Shown here in pieces: positions 13,872-50,312 of a stretch of 64,000 nucleotides of DNA. The translations under genes were made by a program, and so were the position numbers. Positions within the stretch are counted from its first letter, which is position 1. Every line of letters starts with the position of its first letter. The stretch spans positions 27,156,001-27,220,000 of the forward strand of contig NC_134479.1 of NCBI RefSeq assembly GCF_964194025.1, read 5' to 3'. The DNA is from Convolutriloba macropyga (taxonomy: Eukaryota). Under the pieces are notes generated by a model. That model ran no database searches. It was given only the letters and a program-made list of their open reading frames with translations, and was not told where the DNA came from.

Positions 13872-14461
13872 CCCGTGTTGAAGATAACGACGAAAAAACA
13901 ACTGTATTTTGTAAGAGGTCGTAGTTTTGTTGTTTTTGTCGTTTTGTCGCCGTTTTCTTTGTTTCATTAGTTTCCGTCTTCTAAGTAGTCTTTTAAGTGT
14001 AAGAAATGATCATTTCTTTGTCGTTTTTGTCATTTCTTAGGTCGTTTTTTTTTTCAAATGAAATCGTCGTTTTTTGATCGTTTTTCGTTTTTTTATATCG
14101 TTTCTTACGTCGTTTTTTTTTCAAAAGAAATAGTCATTTTTCGATTGTTTTTTTTGTCGTTTAATTGCTCTTGAACAAGTTTTTTTCTATTAGATCGTTT
14201 TGGCATATCTGTATTAAGCCCTGAAAGCGCAGTGGCAAGTGCATCAGGTAGTGAACCTGGAATTCAATAATTCGAAACCCAGTGGGGAGCACGTTTTTTT
14301 TGTCGTTTTTTGAAAAAACGATCATTTCTTACGCAATAAAAAGACGAAATAACGAACAAAACGACGATTCTAACGTAAGGGCTTTGATCGCTTTTGTCTA
14401 ATGAAAACAATTAAAAAACGACGATTTCTTACAAGTGAAAAACAAAATTCGTCAAGACGGG
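13872..14461. mobile_element. Non-autonomous CMC-like DNA transposon (CCCGT family, gtcgtttt repeats) with internal tRNA-like segment
   Basis: Termini cccgtgttgaag / cgtcaagacggg, TSD AT, gtcgtttt repeats on the left and aaaacgac on the right. Confidence 0.8.
14218..14301 (+). other. tRNA-derived (pseudo-tRNA) segment inside a MITE
   Basis: A-box-like aagcgcagtgg, stem-loop cagg-tagtgaa-cctg, degenerate B box ttcgaaaccc, then T8. The acceptor and T stems do not pair cleanly. Confidence 0.5.
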
Positions 14462-18247: not shown

Positions 18248-21067
18248 ATGACGCTCAATATACCTACAGAATATTAGGTCCCTGAGACAAAATTACGATC
18301 AACTTGAAGTATACCTTAATCAATTACCAGATCAACCGCTAGCATTAGTCTTTACGGAAACCAGATGTTCGGATGAAACCAATTTGGAGGGATATAGACT
18401 CCCGAATCTGTCTACCTTGGTAACATGCAACAGAAATAATACAGGTGGGTTGGGGGATTGGGATTTTATTTTCCACTCATACTAAACTACTAAACGTTAT
18501 AAGAAGCAGTGTTAAAAATGTGCAAATTCTCAGTACCATTCTTCAGAGTGGTCCCGAAGTGCTAATAGTAACAGGAGTTTATAAGTCTCCTAATTACCCT
18601 ATGGACGAATTCCTAGCTGTGTTAGGCGATCACATGACAATCCTTATATCAAAAGAAGCTACGAAACATGTAATTTGCGGTGACTTTAATAGAAACGTCT
18701 TCCTAGAGGACCGAAAATTAAGCAAACTGATAGAGATGTTGTCAAATTTTGGATTTCAGCTGAAAAACAACAGAAGAGCTACCAGAGAAACCACATGTAG
18801 CAAAACATGCATTGATCTGCTCTTCTCTAACTTTGAATGTGTGTGCAATGTGGACAAAACCGCTCTTTCTCATCATTATACAGTCTATTTCTCAGCAACT
18901 TTCTTTGCAAACCTAGACACGACCGCGGCTTCGGAGTTTATAAATTCACAATTTAAGAAACTCAAAGAGGTGAATATTTAGAAAGAAACAAATTATCTAG
19001 TCCACCTTGAAATTGAAGAACAGCTTTTAATGATAGATTCTCTTGATTTTGATCAGTCAATTGAGTGGCTTCAACAGACAATTATTTCTTCCAAGGAGTC
19101 AGTTATACCAACCGTTCAACAAACTAAGCCATAATCGACTAAGCAACAATTCGTAACCTCGCAAACAAAAAAAACACTTAAGATAATATCTTAGAGATAA
19201 TACAACCGAATCCAAAAAAAAAACAAATACAAAATTGTCTGTCGTAAAACAAAAGCAGCTTGCAATTTACCAAAGACAAACATTTATGAACAACAGATTG
19301 GCAGTAAAAATGGGTCACAGACTTTATTCAAGATAGTCAAAGATTTAAATGGTGATAAAAATATTGAACAACAGTGTACCGTAGACTGCCATGACACGAA
19401 TTATTTTTTGAATACAATTGGAGAAAAATTAGCTTTGACAAAAAACAAATCAGCTGATTTAACAAATATTCCAATACAAAAACAGACAATGGTTTTTCAG
19501 GAAACAAATGCGGATGAAGTCTTTGAAACAGTCAGACAGTTAAAAATAAAAATTCCTGCGATATGTTTCACATAAGTAGTAGCCTGCTGAATGCCGTTAA
19601 TCAGGCAACATGTGAACTTTTGGCGTCAGTTTTCAACAAATGCGTAGAAGAAACCTAGTTTCCCAAAATTTTAAAAACGGCAAAATTATTACCAATTTTC
19701 AAATCAGGAGAGAAAGGTAGTCCACAGATCTACCGACCTATATCGCTACTCCCAGTAATAGGAAAAGTATTTGAAAAATTAATCTATGCCCAAATAAATT
19801 GTTTCCTGGTTCAAGATAATATATTGAGCGAAATACAGTTTGGATTTAGAAATAAAAGAAGTACAGTTGATGCCATTGCAAAACTTACTGAAAATATTAG
19901 GTTATATCTTGACTCTTTGGATGAAACATGCAGTGTTTTCCTAGATTTGACAAAAGCTTTTGACACTGTTGACCACAATCTTCTTTTATTAAAATGCGAA
20001 AGGTATGGATTGAGAGGTTGTGTTTATCATCTCTTGAAATCGTATCTATCTGATCGTAAACAATTTGTCCAGATTGGCGACAAGCAGTCTGCCGTCTTAG
20101 ATGTTAAATATGGTGTCTCACAGGAGTCCGTCTTAGGACCAATTTTTTTTCTGCTGTACATAAATGATATCGAGAGAGTTTGCCAATCAAGCGAAATCAT
20201 ACTTTTCGCGGACGAAACAACTATTTAATCTTTTACTAAACTTAATAATGATGACTTCCTAAACGATCTTGGCAGGTTGTGCGATTGGTTTGACAGAAAT
20301 AAGTTGACAGTAACTTTCTCAAAGTGTAACATGAATTGTTTTGCAAAAAGGGAGACTGTGAAAAGATTACAATTACAAGGAATAACGTTGTATGACAAAG
20401 AGAGTACAAAAGACCTTGGTGTACACATTGATAAAAAACTAAGCTTTAAAACGCACATAGGAGAAATCAGGAGCAAGCTTAAGAAAACAATCTATTGTTT
20501 CTAACAATACAAAAATAGTTTCAGAAGGGATACTTTGATTAAGTTATACAAATTCTATGTCCAACCAGTTCTTCAGTATGGTGTACTAATTTATGGTTGC
20601 GCAGGCAAATTGGAGCTTAAAAAACTTAACTGGTCACAAAATCACATAATCAGGATAGTATTCGGACTGAAAAAATTCAACAGCGTCCGCGATGTCAGAG
20701 AGAAATATAAATTACTGACACCAATGGAATTGCATGTGTACGAGTTGTTAAAATTGATGAGTGAGAGTTTAAGACCAAGTTCTGACTGTGGCTATGGATC
20801 ACAAATCTTCAGCAATGAAGAAGTCCGCAACATTCAGTCTGATGAGAAAAGACTAAAAACCGTAAAAACCATGAGTTTGACGACGTGCCAACAAAAAGAA
20901 CTCTTATGTACCGAAAAAGAAAATTGTTTAATTTTTTAGTTACTCTAGACAAAAACATTGAAAGAGAAATTTTAGTTGTAAACGAATCTGATCTAGTTAA
21001 TATCCTACATAACTTAAGAGACAATTACATACAGGGAAACGAAGTGCTGACGGGACAGTTCTGGTAA
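18248..21067 (+). pseudogene. LINE ORF2 (APE endonuclease plus reverse transcriptase), disrupted
   Basis: EN motifs NIRSL, FTET, GVYKSP, ICGDFN, TCIDLLF, SHH. RT motifs YRPISLLPVIGKVFEK, QFGFR, FLDLTKAFDTVDH, GVSQESVLGP, LFADET (catalytic DD reads DE). Many stops and frameshifts. Confidence 0.93.
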
Positions 21068-25242: not shown

Positions 25243-25988
25243 CCCGGGTCAACGAAAAATTGGGAAAATATGTAAGATAAGCGGTGACAAGTTGTTTTTT
25301 TCATCGCAAATTTTGTACATAAAATTGCGGTGAAATGAGGTAAAATTATTTATGTTCACCGCTATAGCAAGCGGTGTACTTCCAAAAAACGCATTTCACC
25401 TGCCTTCTTCTTCCACTGCGTCATCTCTCATTAAATTCTAGGATTTTTGTTTTGAATATGAATCAAATGCACTCTACTTTATCTAAAACATGCGCGGTGA
25501 ATTTTTGCGAGATTTGCAATTTTTAGCGGCGAAATTACATATTTTAGCAGTGAAATGTGGTGATTTTTTGTAAGTTCACCGCTTACCTTAGTTGTTAAAT
25601 TACAAAATTACAAAAAATTGTCCAAAAGATTTCATCACATTCAGTGCTGATCTCACACAATTTTAACAATTTTGTCTAAGCGGTGAATTTATGTAAATTC
25701 AACACTAAGATGAGCGGTGAATTTATGTAATTTCAGCGCAATTACCGCTTATCTCACATAATTTGGACACTTTTTTTCAGAACGGTGAATTTATGTAAAT
25801 TCACCGCTAAATTCGGCGGGGAAATTATGTAATTTCACCGCTACCAGGCGATAAAGATTTTTTTCACCGCATTCACCGCCCAATTTATATAATTTCACCG
25901 CATTCACCGCTTATCTTACAAGAAATCCCGCATTCACCGCTTTTCTTAGATAATTTTGCATTGAATGGCGGTGACACCTCGACCCGGG
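25243..25988 (-). mobile_element. CCCGGGTC family MITE (ttcaccgc/gcggtgaa repeats)
   Basis: Termini cccgggtcaa / tcgacccggg, TSD AT; reverse orientation relative to the copies at 39360 and 43486. Confidence 0.9.
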
Positions 25989-33960: not shown

Positions 33961-34835
33961 TTAGTTTGCGTAAATTTGAGCTGGCAAAATGATGGACCCG
34001 ATTAGCCCGAGGCCGCTAAAGCCCAAGCATAGTGACGTAACATAGTGAACAGATACTTTGGCCAGAGTCTGAATAGCAAATGGCATCAACGGGAGTGGTA
34101 AGTACATAATAAAGAAACAAATTCCAGACATGGTCGATCTGATATTCGTCGGCAGAAGTCCAGATAAACTTAGCATCAAATTAACAACCAAATTGTAGTT
34201 AAAAATTTGCCCTACTGAGATAATTACAACAGCAACCCATGCGTTTGGGCATAGAAAGAAGAACGAAAACATTACAATACAAATACCATAGCTGATAAGG
34301 CCGAGAATTTTCAAGTTACAATTTAACTTGTTCTGAAAGATCAAAGTTGTGCACGATATTAAATCTGACGTCACTTGACAAGCAAGAAGTAATAAATAAT
34401 CCCGACCATCCAATAAGTATGTTCTCTTTGTCACTCCTTCGCAATATTGGGAGTTAGTTTCGCCATATAGATAAATCAATTCTGTTTTCACAAAATTTAT
34501 GGCACTAAGAAAAAATCTGATGGCGGTTCCAACCAGCACTATTCCAATAAGTGAGCGTCTAATGTGACTATTTGTCCACGCTGTCTTCAATTTAGCAGTA
34601 AATGATAACTCTTCCGAGGAAGTGCTCGCTAACTCTTCGTCCGGAATGAGTGTGAAATTTTCTGGCAGCGATTGACCATTCTTTCGTGCCATATTTTTCA
34701 ACACTTCCAATGCGTCGCTGGTTTTTCCTTTTGATAAAAGGTATCGCGGAGTTTCAGGCATCAAAAGTACCACAAGAAAAACGTGAATAACAATCGGGAT
34801 ACTCATTATTAGCTGGTAATCTCTCCATGCGTTTT
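33961..34835 (-). CDS. MFS transporter exon 4 (terminal)
   Basis: Acceptor gtatttag|AAAACGCATGG; ENAWRDYQL...PETPRYLL...QIYAN*. Confidence 0.9.
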
Positions 34836-37800
34836 CTAAATACAGCAAATTTGTGTTTCTGTCAAATATTCGCCACAAACTAATGAATTATTTTGTCTTA
34901 GTACTGGTCACAATTATTCTCAAATCTGCTTTTTAATCTATTAGTCATTTTGTTGTTTCATTGAAACTATTGAACAATCGAACAACTTTTGAATTTTATG
35001 AATAAACTCAATTTTCATCGAAATATTCTATGATTTTTTGAATGGCGATTTCCTAAGTTATCATTTATTCATCTCGTGAAATCGTGTAGATCGTTGCTCG
35101 AACTGAAGAGATGAGTTTTTAATGAAGAAACAACAATACTTTCTTCCAAATACACGCCAAGATCTATTCATCTAGCGCGATTTATCAAGATTGATTTCCA
35201 GGGTGATTTTTCTTCCAATGATGCAATTTATGTTTCCTTTTTAGCAGGATCTTCTCACTGCTGAATCAAAAGTGAGCTCTATTTAAAATACTTTCGTAAA
35301 GAAAACAAAAAAAACATCAAATTAAACTAAATCTGAACAATCCAAAATTTAGAGCATAACTATCTAACATCGTGCAATCTATTCTCAAAAAGCTCCCGGG
35401 TTGAGGTTTTTGAGTAAATTTTTGTAAGAAATGCGGTGAATGCGGTGAATTTTTGAAAGAAATGCGGTAATTGCGATGAATGCGGAGAAAATAGATAATT
35501 CACCGCATTTCACCGCCTTTCTTACAAAAATTCACCGCAAAATTCACCGCATTTCCTACAAAAGTTTACCGCCTTTGCTCTCCAACGGTTACTCAATCTG
35601 ATTTAAATTCACACGAAATGGTAAAAATGTATTTTACAGTTGGCGCAGTGGAAAAAGCAATAGCTGTCATGCAGGAGGTCAGAGGTTCGAACCCGTATAG
35701 GGAAGGTCCTTTTGTGTAAGAATACTGAGAACGCGGTGAAAATAAATAATTCACCGCGATTCACTGCATTCACCGCAAAGATGTAAAAAATACGCGGTGA
35801 AGTTTTTTTTTCACCGCATTTCTCCGCATCGTACGAAAATTCACCGCCAAACCTTGACCCGGGCTGTTAAGCGGTTGCATCAATAGCCAGCTGAGCATAT
35901 TTGAGGGTGGTATAAAGTAATCAAGTGGCAGCCAAGTGAATTTCATGAGGGAAGCCGAACGGCAAGGTAGAATTTTCCGAGGGGGGGGGGGTTGAGAGCG
36001 CTAGAGAAAAAAGTGAGACGGAATGAGTGGAAAGATTGGTTGAATTCCAAGAACCGCTCTAAACACCCCAAGGTTATGTCCCCTTAACAGTGTCGTTAAA
36101 GTGCATGCTTAAAAATTATTAAGTCTCTAAGAGAACTGCTAAACAATTGAATGCCCTCCTTTTTTTACCTGTTTGATTTATTTTCAAAGAAACTTTTTTA
36201 GAAAATTCTTCAGCTACCCATGAAATTGATTTCAAAAGTTTTCACAGATAGAGGGCTGGAAAAAAATTTAAATAATAATATTTGTTTTGTAATTATAATG
36301 TAAAGTAATTAAATACTAAAATTAAGAGAGACATTCTTTAAAAAAAAAACTCAAATAAAGCGGACGAAAACTGAGCGGACCAGAGAAGAATAAGAAGGAG
36401 AGTATTTTAAGGTCAAAAATTCGGAAGTAATGCATACCGGTGAATCAGTTTTTACTGACTCTCGAGGAATCCAGATTATACGACTATCAGCACCATTTAA
36501 AAATGTTCTCTACTCAACATTCTAATAAAAAGTTAAAAAAATTTAAACTGTGTTCTTAAAAAATTCCGCTGGTAAAATTGTTTCCCTCTCAGTTTCCCCA
36601 AAATACAAATAAGCCCGATAAACTCGATTCCTAAGCATTCGTTGGGCCAATTTTTTGTCAATCATGGAGTTGAGTTCCTTCTGAAAGCTATGATTACTTT
36701 TGTAATTTTTGAAATCTATCACTAAACAATTTCACCGGCTTATTTGCTTATTTTTTTTTTTAAAAAAAACATCATTTCTTGAGCAGACCATATGCAAAAC
36801 TTTCCCATATAATTCGCTGTTTCTCGAGCAACACAGTTGGCTTATGAATCCTTCCCTTTCCCGAGAAGACCAATAGCTTCATACTTTGCTTACTAAGATT
36901 TCTGCTTGATTTTGAATTTTCGTCGAAATCTTAGAATCAGAAGCTTCCTAAACATAACAACACCAGCAGGTTGCTGCCATTTTTTTTAAGAATTCCAATG
37001 AAAAACTTCTTTAATTGGTCAATCTGAGCGAAGAGACTTGAAAAGATGGAAACCAGTGATGATTTTTTTTTCTATATTACATCAGCCAATTAATGCGACG
37101 CAAAAAGCCAATTAGACGTGTTTTTGTCTAAAAGGAGAACTATTCACGACTTGAAAAGGGTCTGGAACTTGGCTCAAGAGCAGGAAAGTCTCGAGATTCT
37201 CATCCCAGCACATTTTGGTATGCGTTGTTTGCAACAGAGAACACTCTAGTCTGTTATGGTCTAATCAAGAGTCACTTTCAGCCCAATAAGTTCTGATTAC
37301 AAGTAAATCAGATTGTAATTTTAAATTCGTATTTGATGAATTAGTGATGTTGACTCAAATAAACGGCTAAAAACATCTCTCATCTGAATCGAGACTGAAT
37401 TCGAGTCAATAGCTCTCGATCACATGCATCAGTTCAAAAGGGTGCAACCACTAACATATGGTTGCTCCCCTTAAACAGTCGGAATAGCAACTTTCGAATT
37501 CGACGCTCCTTCTAAAAAACGGTCTGTGTTCAAATATGGTACCGGCGGACTTTAGCAATGGCATGCAAAGTTTTCAAGTCGTTAATTTTTAAATATTCTT
37601 TTATTATCAAAAACCCCTTGACTTTGAATTGACTTGACTGCAATTTCTGCAAGAGAAGTCAGTTTTTTTAAAAAAAAAAAACAAGAAGAGCCACCTCTAA
37701 AAGTCTCGTCGGTTTTTAACTTTGATTTTGGTCACAACATTTCGAGCACTTCAGTCGGTGGTTTAGAGGTGATTTTGACCGCATACTTTGAGTGCATACA

Positions 37801-40800
37801 AGGTTTTCAGCATACATTAGTCTGGCCAGGGGGTACTTTGGTCTGCGCCAGTCTGATCACAGATCACCACGGTTTGGCACCTGGACCAGGGAAAGCCTCC
37901 TTGCCTCGACTAAAGAACTTACCATGCCAGTGGTCACTAAATATGAAATATGCCACAAGAATCAAAATGGCCCGAGCCATTGCACTCGCCCATTCGTCTC
38001 CAACCACGAAAGCTCCCCAGTGATGCTCAGCTGGAATCAGTTCATACATTGCTTGTCCCATCAGGTTCGTAGCTCCTTAACAGATCAAAAACAGACTCAA
38101 AACGTGACATCGCTATTTCTGTGAGTCAAAAAATTGATTTTAGTACCGATGTTTAAGTGTGTCCGTTTATCATCCGACCCCTCCATCATCCAAAAATTTT
38201 CCGTGGCCATATCAGCAAAGAAAACAAATCGGCGATGACCAAATTTAAGCTATTTGTCGAAACTTGTTTTCAAATTGGAACTACAGCTACAATTACTTCC
38301 AGTGGCCAATTGTAATCGGTTCAATTAAATCAATTTTAAAGTTCTTGGTAATTACAGGAATTCACTGAAAGTATACACTCTTAATCAATCATGCTCTTTA
38401 CACATGCAAGTTACACTCTACAGGGATCTACCCAGGTTGAGGTCCCAGTCCGAACGTCGAAATGTCTAATACGGAAATGAACGCATGAGGGGGCGTAGTG
38501 CGTTCAAAATTACGCAGTCTGGAAACACAGATCAACGCACGATGGTCTGGACATAAACGCGCCAAAACTTTGGTGTTGGAATGCAAGAACTTGATTTGGA
38601 GCGCACGATGATCTGGACAAGAGCGCGCGAAAGTCTCCATATCTACGCTTTTGGTCTGGGATGGTCTAGAGATATTCGACTTCGAACGCACGAAGAACGC
38701 ACTAAAAGTTTGTTTTGAACGCACGATAGTCTGGACATAGGCACCTTCCGTCTGGGACGGTCTGGACATATCGACTTTCGTTCTGGCACCTCAACCTGGG
38801 TAGTCTATGACATTTTTTTTTCAATAACATTATATATAATTCTGACAATATCGTCCACTAATGCCCCCAGCCCCACCCCTACCAGTCCTCATGACCAAGC
38901 ATTACACGATTTTTTTCATCAAGACGTCTGAAAGAAAAAGAATCATTTGTTTAATATTCGACCGTTTTAGCCAACGCAAAGAAACTCTTGCAAACGCACC
39001 CCCGGCTAAAGAGTAGCCAACTCTGCAGATTAAAAGCCAAGTGTAAGAAGGGGCAACAGCGGAAAACAGACTGAAAATTGCAATCCATACAGAAGAGGCA
39101 AGTGCATATGTCTTTCTTCCAAACTTGTCTGAGAACCATCCCCACAGAACGTAGCTGAGAGCAAATCCAAAGTAAGAGGATATACTAAAAGCCGATTCTT
39201 GAGACGGCGTCAAATTCAGGTCCACATATAACCTAAGCAAAAGAAGATAATTTACACTCACGTCATCTAATTATAGAAAACAAATGGTTATATTTAAAAT
39301 TGTGTGAAAACTGTCAAAATTCGAGGAAGCAGTACAAATAATAATTGTAGCTGTGATAACCCGGGTCGAGGTGTCACTGCCATTCAACGCATAATTATGT
39401 AAGATAAGCGGTGAATGCGGAAGATTTTGTAAGATAAACGGTGAATGCGGTGAATTTACATAAATCAGGCGGTGAGTGCGGTGAAAAACCTTTATCGCCT
39501 GGTAGTGGTGAAATTACATAAATTCACCGCTTCAAAAAACGTGTCCTGATTTTGTAAGATAAGCGTTGAATGCGGTGAAATTATATAAATTCATCGCTTA
39601 ACTTAGTGGTGAACATACATAAATTCATCGATTAGAAAAAAGTTAAAATTGTGTGAGAACAGCAGTGAATGCGGTGAACTTAAATAAATTCAACGCTTAA
39701 CTTAGTGGTGAAATAACATAATTTTACCGCTTAGGGAAAAAAGTTACAATTGCATGAGAACAGCAGTGAATGCGGTGATATTACTAAACTTACAAAAAAT
39801 GGTCGCTGAAGTAAGTGGTGAAACTACACAAACTCACCGCTTGGAAAAAAGTGTGAGATCAGCAGTGAAGGCGGTGAAGTTGCATAAACTCACCGCTTAA
39901 CTTAGTGGTGAAATTACATATCTTCACCGCTTAGTAAACGCTCCGAATTGTTTTTTTTTCAACAAAATTAAGATAGAATTATTAAAAGACGAACGGAAAA
40001 TTTACCCAAGAATAATCAAACATCTTTTTGAAATTTTTTTCAAGCGTTGAATTTTTGTAATTTCACCATTAGAGTAAGCGATGAACTTAACAAAAACCAC
40101 CACTTTCACCGCTTAAATCTGTTATTTCAACGCTAATCTTACAAAAGTTCAACGCGTATGTTTGACAAAAGTAGAGTGAGTTTACTTTAAAATCAAAACA
40201 AATTGCAAGCATATAGTGAGAAAAGGGGCAATAGAAGAAGAAGTGGCTGACATTCAGGAGGTGAAGGGTTCAAATGCGTGCAAGGAGGGTAACTTGTAGT
40301 AAGCGGTGAAATGTGGTGCATTTTTGTAAGTTCACAGCTTACTCTAGCAGTGAACTTACATAATTTCACCGCATTTCATCGAAAAATTAAAATGTACGAA
40401 ATTTGCGGTGAAAAAACCAATTTTTCACTGCTTATCTTAAATATATTTCCGATTTTTCTCTCGACCCGGGAAGTACGCATTCAACAACCAAAGGAAATAG
40501 TTCTGCGAATAAGTCTAACATTAGTAATTTGATTTGCTGTTATATTAACAACAATTTAGGTTGGCAAAGGTACAATTCACAGATTTGCTGCAATATTCAT
40601 TCTTGGAAAAATGAAAATGTCAGTGCACTCGGACTTTTAACCTAATGCCAAATCGTCACGGGAAAACCTACCCTAACTGTGTATCTCTTGTTAGTTTTTC
40701 CTAGGTTAAAACAATGAAAACGCAGCAATATTGCATGCGAAAAATAGACACTTTAGCATAATCGGCCGAAATTTAAGGGAATTGCGCAACCCGTGTTTGC

Positions 40801-43485: not shown

Positions 43486-45238
43486 CCCGGGTCGAGGTGT
43501 CAACGCCATTCAACGCATAATTATGCAAGATAAGCGGAGAATGCGGAAAATTTTGAAAGATAAGCGGTGAAAGAGGTGAATTTACATATATCAGGCGGTG
43601 AATGCGGCGAAAAAAAATTATCACTTGGCAGCGGTGAAATTACATAATTTCGCCGCTGAAATTTCACCGCTTTGAAAAAAGGTGTCCAAATTAGGTAAGA
43701 CCCCAATGGTTACGGAATTTATATCGTGTAAGATCTAACAAATTTCTGACAAAACCATCTTGCTAATAGCCTGTAAGGGGATGCATCTTCTTATCAGATC
43801 TGATAAGACGTTTATCAGATCTTATACAATAAAAATTCCTCTTATAAGATCTTACATTATAAAAATTCCTCTTATAAAATCTTACACGATAAAAATTCCT
43901 CTTATAAGATCTTACACGATAAAAATTCCGTCTCATCAGATCTTACATGATAAAAACTTCCTCTTATATAAATTCCTGAAGTATGGTATATTTTTCATAT
44001 TGAAGACAACTCAGAGTTGCTCTCAAGCAGTAGTCGAAAAACTGCAGCATTCAACACTTAAGTGTCAGAGCAACAAAGAGAAAAATATCTTATTCTGTCT
44101 TTTATGACTTATAAGATAATGTAGAAAAATTATTTGAGTGGCAGGGGCTTTCTCCGAAGCGGTGATTATCAGCTAGGCTGAAAATGTTTTTCCAAAGACC
44201 AAAACTATCTTGGACTGCTAAGTTTAGCCATAGTACCCAGTTAAGACTCACAAAAAAACTGCCGCCAAGACAGAATCAAAAAACTTTTTTTTTGGTTTCT
44301 TAATTGGTTAGCTGACCGATTATTTTTTTACTTTCATAGGATCTTGACTATGTTATACGGTTATATTGAAATAATTAAAAGATGTCATATCAGACCTTAC
44401 ACGATAAAAATTCCGTCTTATCAGATCTTACACGATAAAAATTCTGATTAAAGGAATGTTTATCTTATAAGATGTCTTATCAGATCTTACACGATAAAAA
44501 TTCCTCTTACCAGAATTTTTATCGTATAAGATCTGATCAGCAGAATTTTTATCGTGTAAGATCTGATTAGATCTTACACGATAAAAACTCTTAGTCAGCA
44601 TCTTATCAGATCTTACACGATAAAGATTCCAGAATCACTGGGGGATAAGCGATGAATGCGATGAAATTAAATAAATTCACCGCTTAACTTAATGGTGAAC
44701 ATACACAAATTCAACGCTTGGAAATGGAAAACGTTTTGATTAGTCTTTTGTTCAACGAGGTTAAGATACAATACGAAAATTTACCTATAAACTGTCATAC
44801 ATCTTTTTGAAACTTTTTTAATAGATGAAATTATGTAATTTCACCACTAGATTAAGCAGTGAAAATACAAAAAATAACCGCACTTCACCGCATTTCATCG
44901 CTAAAATTTGTAATTTCACAGCTAATCTTACAAAAGTTCATCGCGGATGTTTTCCAAAAAGTAGACTGATTTTGATTTAAACTCAAAACAAATACTCAGA
45001 CTTTTAGTGAGAAGTGGTGCAGTGGAAGGAAAAGTAGCTGACATGCAGGAGGTGAGAGGTTCAAATCCATTCAAGGACGGGTACGTATAGTAATCGGTGA
45101 AAATTGGTTAATTTTTTCTCCAGCGGTGAACTTACATGTTTTCACCGCATTCACTGCATTTCATCGCAAATTTAGGCACGAAATTTGCGCTGAAAAAACC
45201 AGCTTATTACCGTTTTTTCCGATTTTTGTTGACCCGGG
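43486..45238 (+). mobile_element. Middle CCCGGGTC family MITE of the nested stack
   Basis: Termini cccgggtcga / ttgacccggg, TSD TA; tRNA-like segment at about 45015-45070. Confidence 0.9.
43701..44643. mobile_element. Inner MITE (CCCCA termini, agatcttacacgataaaaa repeats)
   Basis: Termini ccccaatg / cactgggg, TSD GA splitting the host motif gtaagataagcg. Confidence 0.88.
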
Positions 45239-46039
45239 TACCCTCAAAAAGGGTGGAAAAAGAGGAACTTAAGTGTGTAAAAAAATATCTTTTCAATTAC
45301 ACATTTAGTTTGTATTTACACCCTTTTTTACACTACTAAATCTCTTAATTATACTCTTCCACTCTTTTTTTATAGAGACTCTTGATTTCTACTTTTCCAC
45401 CCGTAATAGGGGGAGCAATAACGGTGTAAAATTTTTTTTAAAATACTTTTTACACTCTTTCCCCATTATTTTTCGGTAAATTTCTCGGCCCGGAAACCGT
45501 CTCGAATGCACGCGGTAGTCTGATTAGAAGTGATATATGATTTTACGTAGCTGAAGAAGTGGCAGAAATTTTTGAAGTTGATTTAAGAATCAGCTTTTGA
45601 GACTTTTCCATTATGGTTTGTTTCTCAACTGGGCTGAGGACCGGCTACGGCGGACTGACAAACAATCAACTATAGGAGACTTATTAGCAGAGCAAAGCAG
45701 AAATACCAGGCTCAAATTCCATCCTCAAAACAACATCAACGCAAGCAATAGAATTGCAACAAATAATTGGCACAAAACTGTCGGAAATCTCAAGCCACGT
45801 TGATAAACCGACTTTGTTGAGGTTTTTCCAGTATGTTTTGATTGTGTTTACCTCCTCAATTTCTAAACCGGGCTGTAGACAGGCTGCAGCGGAGCTAAAG
45901 GAAATCAGCTATGAAGATTTATGAGCAGAAAAAAAGCAGAAACAACATGCTCAAACCCAATCTCCGACGTTACAAAAAAGACAACAATGAAACAGTCCTA
46001 AAAGTGGTATAAAATTTTTTATAGTTTTGGAAAAATCTT

Positions 46040-47560: not shown

Positions 47561-48887
47561 TGAAAACAGGAAGGACAAACGCTTTTAACAATGCAAATCG
47601 TTCGAAAAAATCTTGATATTTTTTACTGATTACTATAACCCATGGATCGGATTCAAAAACTCAGTTTTCGAAAAAAAATTGACAACAAGTATCAAAAATA
47701 AAAACCTATGAAAAACTGAACAGAACTAATCAAGCTCAATGTGTTCTAACACGGTGATAAAATATAATTCACCTAGGAAAGCTAATTTTTAAAGCTTGTT
47801 TTTATTTGCAACTTGTTTAAAGGCCTGGGCATTAGTGTGCATCTAAGGCCAATTCCGTTGACCATAGATCAACTACATTCATACCAACATTTTCGTAAAT
47901 CTGTACTAATCATTGCATCTCCGAATCTGGCTCTTTGAACAGCAAATTGTGGCCGACATTGGTTTCACAATTCTCAGCGATAGCAAACAAACTGTTGGAG
48001 ATCGATCTTGTAAAATTTTGACTATCAAGGTTGAAGCTATCTTCAGAACAATTGGGCTGCGGGAAGTTCTACTGGGGTCTCATGATACAAATTGTTTATT
48101 TCTAAGCATAAATCATCTGTGATACCTGTTCATTTCGTCTTCAGTTTTTCAATGTTAGCGTGTAGATGGTCATAATTCGCTTCGAAGCTTTCGAGTTGTC
48201 GATTCCCTGTATAACGATTAACAATCCAACTGCAGATATTAAGACTCCCCGTCAGAATTTTAATAGGATGATTGTTGGCGTATTTGAAAATCCTAGCAGA
48301 TGTAATCCATAACGGGCCAAACGTACTGCGTTGCCAAGCTAGTTGTCGCAGCAAATGGAAATTGATTGAGTCAAATTTCGTTAGAGATTAACCAAAAAGA
48401 CATGCTACCACTGAAAACCTCTAGAAAATGTCCACATAATTTTGAATTTGAGGTACTCTCGTACATTGATGGTACACAAACCAGTAAATCATATTTTGTA
48501 AGTTTGCATCGTGTTCAGCGGAACTCCAAGAAAAAAAGTTAGGACCAAAAAATAGAACAAGGTCGTTTTTAAAAGAGTTCAATTGAACTGGATGTCCTGA
48601 TTGACCTTTTGAACTTGTTGGAAAGAGTTAGTTGGCTCGTTGCGTTGTCGATTGCGCTTAGTTCAGTCAAACTTAGTTGCTCGGCTCAAAAACTTATAGC
48701 CTCATTGCAAAACACCTAAGGAACTGATGCATCTTTTCTACTGGACAAGTCACAGCGAGATTCGGGACAAAATCGAACAGTTTAGAGTGTCCTTCAATGC
48801 CTAATGTGTCAACTTCTCGGTCTTTCTCTTTATTCGCCTTTCTTTTCTCGACAGGTCCGGTCCCAAACTTTTAGTACAAATTAATAA

Positions 48888-50312
48888 ACTCACCGCTTTG
48901 AAAAAAGTTGTCCAAATTAAGTAAGAAAAGCGGTTAAAGCGATCAAACTGGAATAAATTCACCGCGTAACTTAATTGTGAACATACATGAATTCAGCGCT
49001 TCGAACACGCTTTGGTTAGTCTTTTTTTTTGTTCAACGAGGTTAAGATACAATTATTAAAAGACGCAAGGAAAATTTACCTATAAACTGTCATACATCTT
49101 TTTGAAACTTTTTTAATAGATGAAATTATGTAATTTCACCACTAGATTAAGCAGTGAGAATAAAAAAAATCACCGCACTTCACCGCATTTCATCGCTAAA
49201 ATTTGTAATTTCACAGCTTATCTTACAAAAGTTCACCGCGCATGTTTAACAAAAAGTAGACTGATTTTGATTTAAACCAAAACAAGTATTCGGACTTTTA
49301 GTGAGAAGTGGTGCAGTGGAAGGAAAAGTAGCAGAAATGCAGGAGTTCAGAGGTTCCAATCCGTGGACTGACGGTTACGTGTAGTGAAATGTGGTTAATT
49401 CTTAATCCAGCGTTGAACTTACATGTTTTCACCGCATTCACTTCATTTCATCGCAAAATTATGTACGAATATTGCGGTGAAAAAACCAGCTTTTTACCGC
49501 TTTTTGCCCATTTTTTTTTACCCGAGTACCCTTAAAAAGGGTGGAAAAAGAGGAAATTAAGAGTATAAAAGAGGGGAAATAAAGTATTAACTTCTACGAT
49601 TTTTAGTTTTTTCAATTACACCTTTAACCTGTTTTTACAACCTTTTTTACACCACTAAATCTCTTATTTATACTCTTCCACTCTTTATCTTTTATATAGA
49701 CTCTTGAATTCTACTTTTCCAACCATATTAATGATTTTACGTAGCTGAAGAAGTGGCGGAAATTTTTGAAGTTGATTTAAGAATCAGCTTTTGAGACTTT
49801 TCCATTATGTTTTCTCAACTGGGCTGAGGACCGGCTACGGCGGACTTAAAAACAACCAACTATAGAAGACTTATTAGCAGAGCAAAGCAGAAATACCAGG
49901 CTCAGTTCTACCCCCAAAACAAAATTAACGCCAGCAAAAAAATGGCAACGAACAATTGGCACAAAACTGTCGGAAATCTCAATCCAAATTGAAAAACCGA
50001 CTTTGTTGAGGTTTTTCAAGAATGTTTTGATGGTGTTTCCCTCCTCATTTTCTGAACTGGGCTGTGTACAGGCTGCAGCAGAGCTAAAGGAAAATAACTA
50101 GGAAGATTTATGAGCACAAGAAAAGCAGAAAAAACATACTCAAACCCAATCTCCGAAGTTACAAAAAAGACAACAATGAAACAGTCCTAAAAGTGGTATA
50201 AAAACCTTTATAACTTTGGAAGAAATCGTATATCTTTTTGCAAAACAAGGTATTTCAAAAATTTTTTTACACAGCACACATATGGTTCAATTCTCGCCAT
50301 TAGTGGGGTTTG
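48888..50312 (+). repeat. Local segmental duplicate of 43660-43700 plus 44644-46130
   Basis: Shares the MITE right half, the ccct..aaaagggtggaaaaagagg flank and the atgattttacgtagctgaagaagtggc block. Confidence 0.85.

Follow-up and report, generated by a model that had tools for sequence, protein, structure and literature searches.

We analyzed a 64,000-nucleotide stretch of Convolutriloba macropyga DNA (contig NC_134479.1, positions 27,156,001 to 27,220,000 of the forward strand; hereafter the window, with positions counted from its first letter) and found that the element at 35395-35863 is one old copy of a high-copy, non-coding, cut-and-paste family of transposable elements of the miniature inverted-repeat type (MITEs), here called family A. 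A cassette in the center of the element is, judged by its alignment to tRNA genes of the same genome, a strongly decayed tRNA-gene remnant, in which all of the tRNA stems are lost yet the A box, the B box and the spacing between them are kept. This remnant has been passed on by DNA transposition since before family A split from a longer sister family, family B. The resulting layout, that of a predicted promoter for RNA polymerase III (Pol III), is an odd one for a transposon whose movement does not require an RNA copy.

The tRNA derivation of the cassette had been proposed in a preliminary description made from the letters of the window, and was borne out by alignment. The tRNA comparison set consisted of 85 distinct genes, carrying nine isotype labels, from the genome's own tRNA arrays. 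The cassette aligned to tRNA positions 3-66 of the genome's tRNA-Ala with scores of 44-50, versus 21 +/- 3 for shuffled sequences. Its boxes fell within the range of the genome's own tRNA genes and the distance from the start of the A box to the start of the B box was 43 nt, exactly as in the genome's tRNA-Ala(TGC). The layout is that of a type 2 (tRNA-type) Pol III promoter, with consensus boxes 30-60 nt apart (here with 32 nt between them) and a downstream T run, which begins 15 nt past the B box and is T4 in this copy and T6 in the family consensus. Among the nine isotype labels sampled, Ala was the best fit for the 5' and middle parts of the cassette; the 3' part (B box to GTGGGGAC) was more like tRNA-Lys when judged by eye, and the family B version of the B box matches the B box of the genome's tRNA-Thr and tRNA-Cys letter for letter. 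The earlier remark that the cassette recalls a tRNA-Asp/Ala anticodon arm holds up as a likeness, though not as an assignment of the source isotype.

No tRNA was found in the window by ARAGORN or by Rfam at gathering thresholds, and the Rfam tRNA model gave no match to either the window copy or a young copy even at E<=10. Hence, the check by tRNA finder and covariance model that had been proposed earlier failed to detect a cloverleaf. The 90-nt cassette RNA also folded no better than shuffles (z = -0.29). We read these negative results as loss of tRNA structure rather than as absence of tRNA ancestry. The T run needs a further caution. The A box, B box and T4 named in the preliminary description are all present, but the T4 consists of the first bases of the arm repeat unit (TTTTTGTAAGAA..., TTTTTGTAAGAAATGCGGTGAA) and thus provides no independent evidence of a terminator. 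The genome's tRNA genes lie in long tandem arrays with periods of ~275-430 bp (for example C13:31.10-31.23 Mb, C7:44.05-44.10 Mb, C1:20.08-20.12 Mb and C15:4.79-4.83 Mb), many members of which differ only in the anticodon. Several copies have a Cys-type body with GGA for GCA, and Lys-type bodies are found that read as TTG or as a TTA 'stop' anticodon.

Family A was characterized by searches of the 1.18 Gb assembly that holds the window (GCF_964194025.1). First-look candidates numbered 3,070 for the whole element, 2,600 for the right arm and 1,424 for the cassette, and the copy number of the family in the genome exceeds 1,000. The 40 scored full-length matches to the window copy were 82-86% identical to it. 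Identical dinucleotides flanked 25 of 26 full-length genomic copies and varied from copy to copy (CT, TT, TA, GT, AT, AA, CA, TG, TC and GA, with AT in 4 of the 26), which confirms a target site duplication (TSD) of 2 bp. Together with the ends of the element, these duplications upheld the earlier classification as a CCC/GGG-ended MITE. The consensus built from the 26 copies, another check proposed earlier, was 476 bp in length; the copies averaged 94% identity to it and the boxes and T6 were present in the consensus. The window copy is 89% identical to the consensus (~11% diverged). Consensus ends are CCCGGGTCGAGG and its reverse complement. The terminal 15-nt ends of the window copy match one another at 13 of 15 positions, and the end motif was found 5 to 7 times in the window versus the 0.08-0.14 matches expected by chance.

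Both arms of the MITE are inverted arrays of an 8-nt motif and each arm is complementary to itself; element positions 20-175 (the left arm) match their own reverse complement at 78.5%. The GCGGTGAA / TTCACCGC arm motifs are predicted, and probably are, transposase-binding sites. Rfam matches to the element were all weak and of the generic long-hairpin type given by the arms, and no open reading frame of >=130 aa overlapping the element was found. Family A elements range from 469 to 650 bp. One left-arm module is duplicated in many of them, to give ~620-650 bp instead of 476, and a younger subfamily of ~650 bp with this duplication has members ~98% identical to each other, which indicates recent activity of the family. 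Within 1.2 kb at C2:53755977-53757115, three whole or partial copies follow one another head to tail. In contigs from four DNA runs of one study, the only runs that a search for sequencing data returned, coverage of the arms exceeded that of the single-copy flanks by a factor of hundreds to thousands. The copy at 35395-35863 was present at a single-copy depth of ~70x, equal to that of its flanks, and no joint marking an empty site or allele at this position was found in these contigs.

The cassette was found at the same place in all 26 full-length copies. As these copies had been chosen by whole-element similarity, it is of note that the cassette was also present in 10 of 10 copies chosen by the right arm alone. 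In the reverse direction, the best 30 genome-wide matches to the cassette all lay inside the MITE, and no free-standing cassette was seen among them. Neither an A-rich, simple-repeat or long interspersed element (LINE)-like tail nor a TSD was found around the cassette, which is bounded by element sequence. The presence of the cassette in every copy examined and the location of every match inside the MITE argue that there was no secondary insertion of a short interspersed element (SINE). Two assertions of the preliminary description, that the cassette belongs to the element and that it is not a one-off SINE, thus held up, the first being strengthened by the sister family.

Family B has ends CCCGGGTCGAGGTGTCAC..., shares the arm motif of family A and carries a homologous spacer plus cassette. 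Forty genomic matches to the right half of family B were scored, and each of them extends across the cassette. Given this homology the cassette must be older than the split between families A and B. Four members of family B are in the window, which was searched with a profile built from family-A cassettes alone. Matches were obtained at 49299-49376 (E 1.6e-10), 45005-45079 (E 7.7e-10) and 40223-40288 (E 5.5e-5). On the minus strand, 25432-25404 gave only a 29-nt piece from the A-box side with E ~1, the B-box half having been deleted. Hence, of the additional cassettes placed earlier at about 25400, 40225, 45015 and 49308, the last three were recovered by the profile and the first is merely an A-box piece. 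Moreover, the cassettes at about 45015 and 49308 represent one duplicated insertion. Positions 43486-45270 and 48870-49560 contain the element and its right flank (TACCCT.AAAAAGGGTGGAAAAAGAGGAA...) twice, 4.3 kb apart and at ~85% identity, and the shared flank and this identity indicate a local segmental duplication rather than two independent insertions. An unrelated repeat-rich insert at ~43700-44640 is nested in the family B element at 43486-45238. It contains many direct and inverted copies of a ~20-nt motif (TCTTACACGATAAAAATTCC / GGAATTTTTATCGTGTAAGA) and is probably another non-autonomous element.

Table 1 Features of the family A element at 35395-35863 and of the other MITEs in the window.
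Feature	Position	Strand	Remarks
MITE copy, family A	35395-35863		469 bp, non-coding, CCCGGG-type inverted ends, TSD CT
Left TSD copy, CT	35393-35394	.	2-bp duplication typical of the family (25/26 genomic copies)
5' terminal inverted repeat (TIR)	35395-35409	+	CCCGGGTTGAGGTTT; family consensus CCCGGGTCGAGGTTT
Left arm	35414-35569	.	Self-complementary array of GCGGTGAA / TTCACCGC subterminal motifs
Unique spacer 5' of cassette	35570-35629	+	Common to family A and sister family B
Decayed tRNA-gene-derived cassette (by alignment)	35630-35715	+	~85 nt, without cloverleaf; family-A profile match 35633-35713, E 1.4e-21
A box	35641-35651	+	TGGCGCAGTGG, fits TRGYNNARYGG; intact in old, middle and young subfamily consensus
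B box	35684-35694	+	GGTTCGAACCC, identical to B box of the genome's own tRNA-Ala(TGC) genes
T run	35710-35713	+	T4 here, T6 in consensus; doubles as first bases of right-arm repeat unit
Right arm	35723-35848	.	Second self-complementary array of GCGGTGAA / TTCACCGC motifs
3' TIR	35849-35863	-	CCCGGGTCAAGGTTT on minus strand
Right TSD copy, CT	35864-35865	.	
Family B copy	25243-25988	-	TSD AT; cassette ~25404-25434, A-box side only
Family B copy	39360-40470	+	TSD AA; cassette 40213-40298, boxes decayed
Family B copy	43486-45238	+	TSD TA; cassette 45004-45088; A box TGGTGCAGTGG, B box GGTTCAAATCC
Family B copy, 5'-truncated	48870-49526	+	Cassette 49298-49390; segmental duplicate of the 43486-45238 copy plus flank
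Family C MITE	13872-14461	+	CCCG...CGGG ends, TSD AT, different arm motifs; tRNA-like cassette ~14220-14301
CCC-ended MITE, 370 bp	38431-38800		CCCAGGTTGAGGT... / ...ACCTCAACCTGGG, TSD TA; arrays of GAACGCACGA and GTCTGGACA motifs

In published work, the signature of the animal CACTA-like TRC elements is a TIR that opens with a CCC core, plus a 2-bp TSD (PMC1636069), and the wider CMCT clade makes duplications of 2-5 bp (PMC12730594). Family A has both the CCC core and the 2-bp TSD. We infer from these ends and this footprint that the family belongs with the animal CACTA-like (CMC/TRC) elements, the partner transposase being putative. Subterminal repeat arrays are a further likeness to SmTRC1 and its relatives (PMC1636069) and to CMCT (PMC12730594). 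Transposase_21-type transposases, which are candidate partners, are also present in the host genome, where that domain gave more than 60 matches over cut-off with open frames of up to 1,073 aa. Unlike CMC/TRC elements, the present element is non-coding and carries an apparent remnant of a tRNA gene laid out as a Pol III promoter, a feature for which no description in that group was found in the papers searched. The other animal group with 2-bp TSDs is ISL2EU of the PHIS superfamily, which is AT-specific and has TIRs starting with GG (PMC4482050). We rejected this assignment because the TSD of the present family can be any dinucleotide (AT in only four of the 26 copies) and its TIRs start with CCC; the 2-bp target duplication was the only point in common.

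Whether the boxes have been retained by selection was judged at two levels. Once inserted, copies lose the boxes at the neutral rate. A different result was obtained for subfamily-level variants, defined as those present in at least 6 of 65 copies. Such variants were found at 1 of the 22 box sites and at none of the six sites of the T run, versus 16 of the 58 remaining cassette sites, 14 of the 55 spacer sites and 21 of the 155 right-arm sites. Relative to the remainder of the cassette, the boxes were thus depleted of such variants about sixfold (Fisher p=0.03), and comparison of the boxes plus T run with the rest of the center gave p=0.009. The boxes of the young consensus and of the window copy were identical at 22 of 22 positions, versus 60 of 80 in the rest of the cassette and the upstream region; the same comparison against a family B copy gave 19 of 22 and 48 of 80. 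The test of boxes against flanks proposed in the preliminary description therefore had a divided outcome, with neutral decay in individual copies and subfamily-level changes that avoid the boxes. Likewise, of the findings which that description had held to speak against its reading, neutral decay, one half of a condition that also required a lack of transcription, was found in the copies, whereas the cassette was neither absent nor part of an independent SINE. These data form a modest signal, suggestive and short of proof, that the lineages that kept multiplying kept the promoter layout. That the boxes were kept because they serve the element is a proposition that could go either way.

A scheme that would accommodate these data has a Transposase_21-type transposase of the genome moving the element in trans and binding its arm motifs, and the boxes kept in multiplying lineages because they bind TFIIIC and perhaps recruit Pol III. 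The most plausible advantage would be a nucleosome-free, unsilenced center, which would leave the arms open to transposase. Any transcript made would be ~80 nt in length, with its start ~10 nt ahead of the A box and its end in the T run. After insertion copies would be unconstrained and undergo neutral decay; only about a quarter keep both boxes. Taken as a whole, this explanation (a MITE with a tRNA remnant, the boxes of which are kept in multiplying lineages through TFIIIC) is in our judgment evenly poised. The stronger version, in which the amplification of a class II lineage itself requires a tRNA-type TFIIIC/Pol III module, is doubtful. As part of that version the module may be the DNA-transposon counterpart of a SINE promoter, which would serve to gain access to chromatin or to evade silencing and not to produce a transposition template.

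The main alternative is that the remnant is a pure passenger, captured once by an ancestral non-autonomous element to which the boxes give nothing, the boxes being well kept merely by chance or because they are short. Capture could have occurred by aberrant transposition or by gap repair beside a tRNA gene. Several observations fit this alternative and weigh against a role of the boxes. Singleton changes affect 1.7% (A box) and 1.3% (B box) of cells versus 1.3-1.9% elsewhere, and among 40 copies sampled regardless of the cassette, the A box was intact in 21, the B box in 18 and both in only 11. The test for constraint was post hoc and used 65 copies, of which 30 had been chosen by cassette similarity. 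The boxes were no better conserved than the arms (p=0.32), and in one subfamily of at least seven copies that has spread, the first base of the B box is T instead of G. The T run is accounted for by the arm repeat unit to which it belongs, and no T run immediately follows the cassette in the family B copies of the window. At least one other CCC-ended MITE in the window, that at 38431-38800, has no tRNA-like cassette, and thus elements of this class can move without one. Moreover, we know of no need of a DNA transposon for an RNA copy. A passenger does not readily account for the loss of all stems while boxes and spacing still fit the consensus in old, middle and young subfamilies and in family B, nor for the paucity of subfamily variants in the boxes relative to the rest of the cassette (p=0.03). 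We consider the passenger explanation quite possible, if somewhat improbable. B boxes can bind TFIIIC without transcription (extra-TFIIIC, or ETC, sites), and it might be argued that the host uses the copies as TFIIIC-bound boundary or ETC sites, or as small-RNA genes that it maintains, the element merely having spread them. Several hundred copies would still carry both boxes (28% of more than 1,000). However, inserted copies show no sign of purifying selection, the rates of singletons in the boxes equal those elsewhere and retention of the boxes in the 35395-35863 copy is within chance (~0.01-0.1, as estimated from 10-19% divergence), and thus host use seems unlikely.

Two other explanations were rejected. 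Transfer RNA heads typify SINEs, and a tRNA-derived SINE might have landed in one or a few MITE copies. SINE insertion has been proposed as the origin of TRIMp3 elements, non-autonomous LTR elements that bear a Pol III promoter (PMC10886601). The fixed position of the cassette in every copy examined, the location of the 30 best matches inside the MITE and the lack of retroposition marks (a tail, a LINE-like 3' part or flanking duplications of its own) make an independent SINE very improbable for the present family. An ancient SINE insertion into the founder may be how the cassette originated, which would be a matter of its history and no rival account of its present nature. The remaining explanation, that A-box-like and B-box-like words arose at random in an AT-rich repeat, would agree with the failure of the Rfam tRNA model and ARAGORN and with a fold no better than that of shuffles. 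It is practically eliminated by the two consensus boxes at exact tRNA spacing and by a 60-nt alignment to the genome's tRNA genes that scored 8-10 standard deviations above shuffles.

A third family bears on how often such a module has been acquired. Family C, which has at least 40 full-length genomic copies at 77-84% identity, contains a cassette with central A-box-like and B-box-like words followed by a T run. The family-A cassette profile does not detect this cassette. It aligned best to the genome's tRNA-Lys, including parts of both acceptor strands (30 versus 20.6 +/- 2.8), and alignment of the family C and family A cassettes scored 34 versus 15 +/- 2.6 for shuffles, a difference of seven standard deviations that might arise between any two tRNA-derived sequences. 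Both a common origin with the family A cassette and an independent capture may be compatible with these scores. The best fit of the family C cassette being to another tRNA (Lys), such a module may have been taken up on more than one occasion. A second capture, if true, would strengthen the case for a selected role.

Other features of the window are a 305-aa open frame on the minus strand at 33961-34878 with a sugar/MFS transporter domain match (E 1e-8), from which the family A element lies ~500 bp, either upstream of that piece or in an intron, and broken non-LTR (long terminal repeat) retrotransposon pieces at 18445-20939 with matches to endonuclease and reverse-transcriptase domains.

Full-text literature searches turned up no MITE or DNA transposon described as having A and B boxes, a tRNA-derived part or Pol III promoter, or TFIIIC; one paper found (PMC6947457) concerned CENP-B boxes. 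Indeed, one paper classifies an element as a MITE and not as a SINE on the ground that it lacks such a promoter (PMC3845634). The closest precedent is the TRIMp3 group, comprising Cassandra, Helenus and Ajax; these LTR retrotransposons are non-autonomous and have a Pol III promoter derived from 5S or tRNA (PMC10886601). Those elements replicate via RNA and the use of their promoter is obvious, whereas the present element is of class II and has no RNA intermediate. The likeness to tRNA-derived SINEs lies in a tRNA module that has lost its cloverleaf but retains A and B boxes spaced as in a tRNA, with a T run after them, and in a high copy number with the boxes kept in proliferating lineages while inserted copies decay. 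Unlike a SINE, the present element moves as DNA, has inverted ends with a fixed 2-bp TSD outside the TIRs, lacks a LINE-derived or A-rich tail and has its tRNA module in the center rather than at the 5' end, such that a transcript ending at the T run would exclude the ends of the element.

A thousand-copy DNA transposon with an inherited tRNA-type promoter layout breaks the rule, based on a Pol III promoter, by which textbooks and annotation pipelines separate SINEs from MITEs, and the annotation of tRNAs, SINEs and repeats in acoel genomes will go astray on this family. Several hundred potential TFIIIC/Pol III sites are also distributed over the chromosomes with it, and the family may plausibly spread active Pol III or TFIIIC sites. 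If the boxes are not kept by selection, the family is a tidy example of a captured passenger. If they are truly kept by selection on the element, this would be a new way for a DNA transposon to use the host Pol III machinery.

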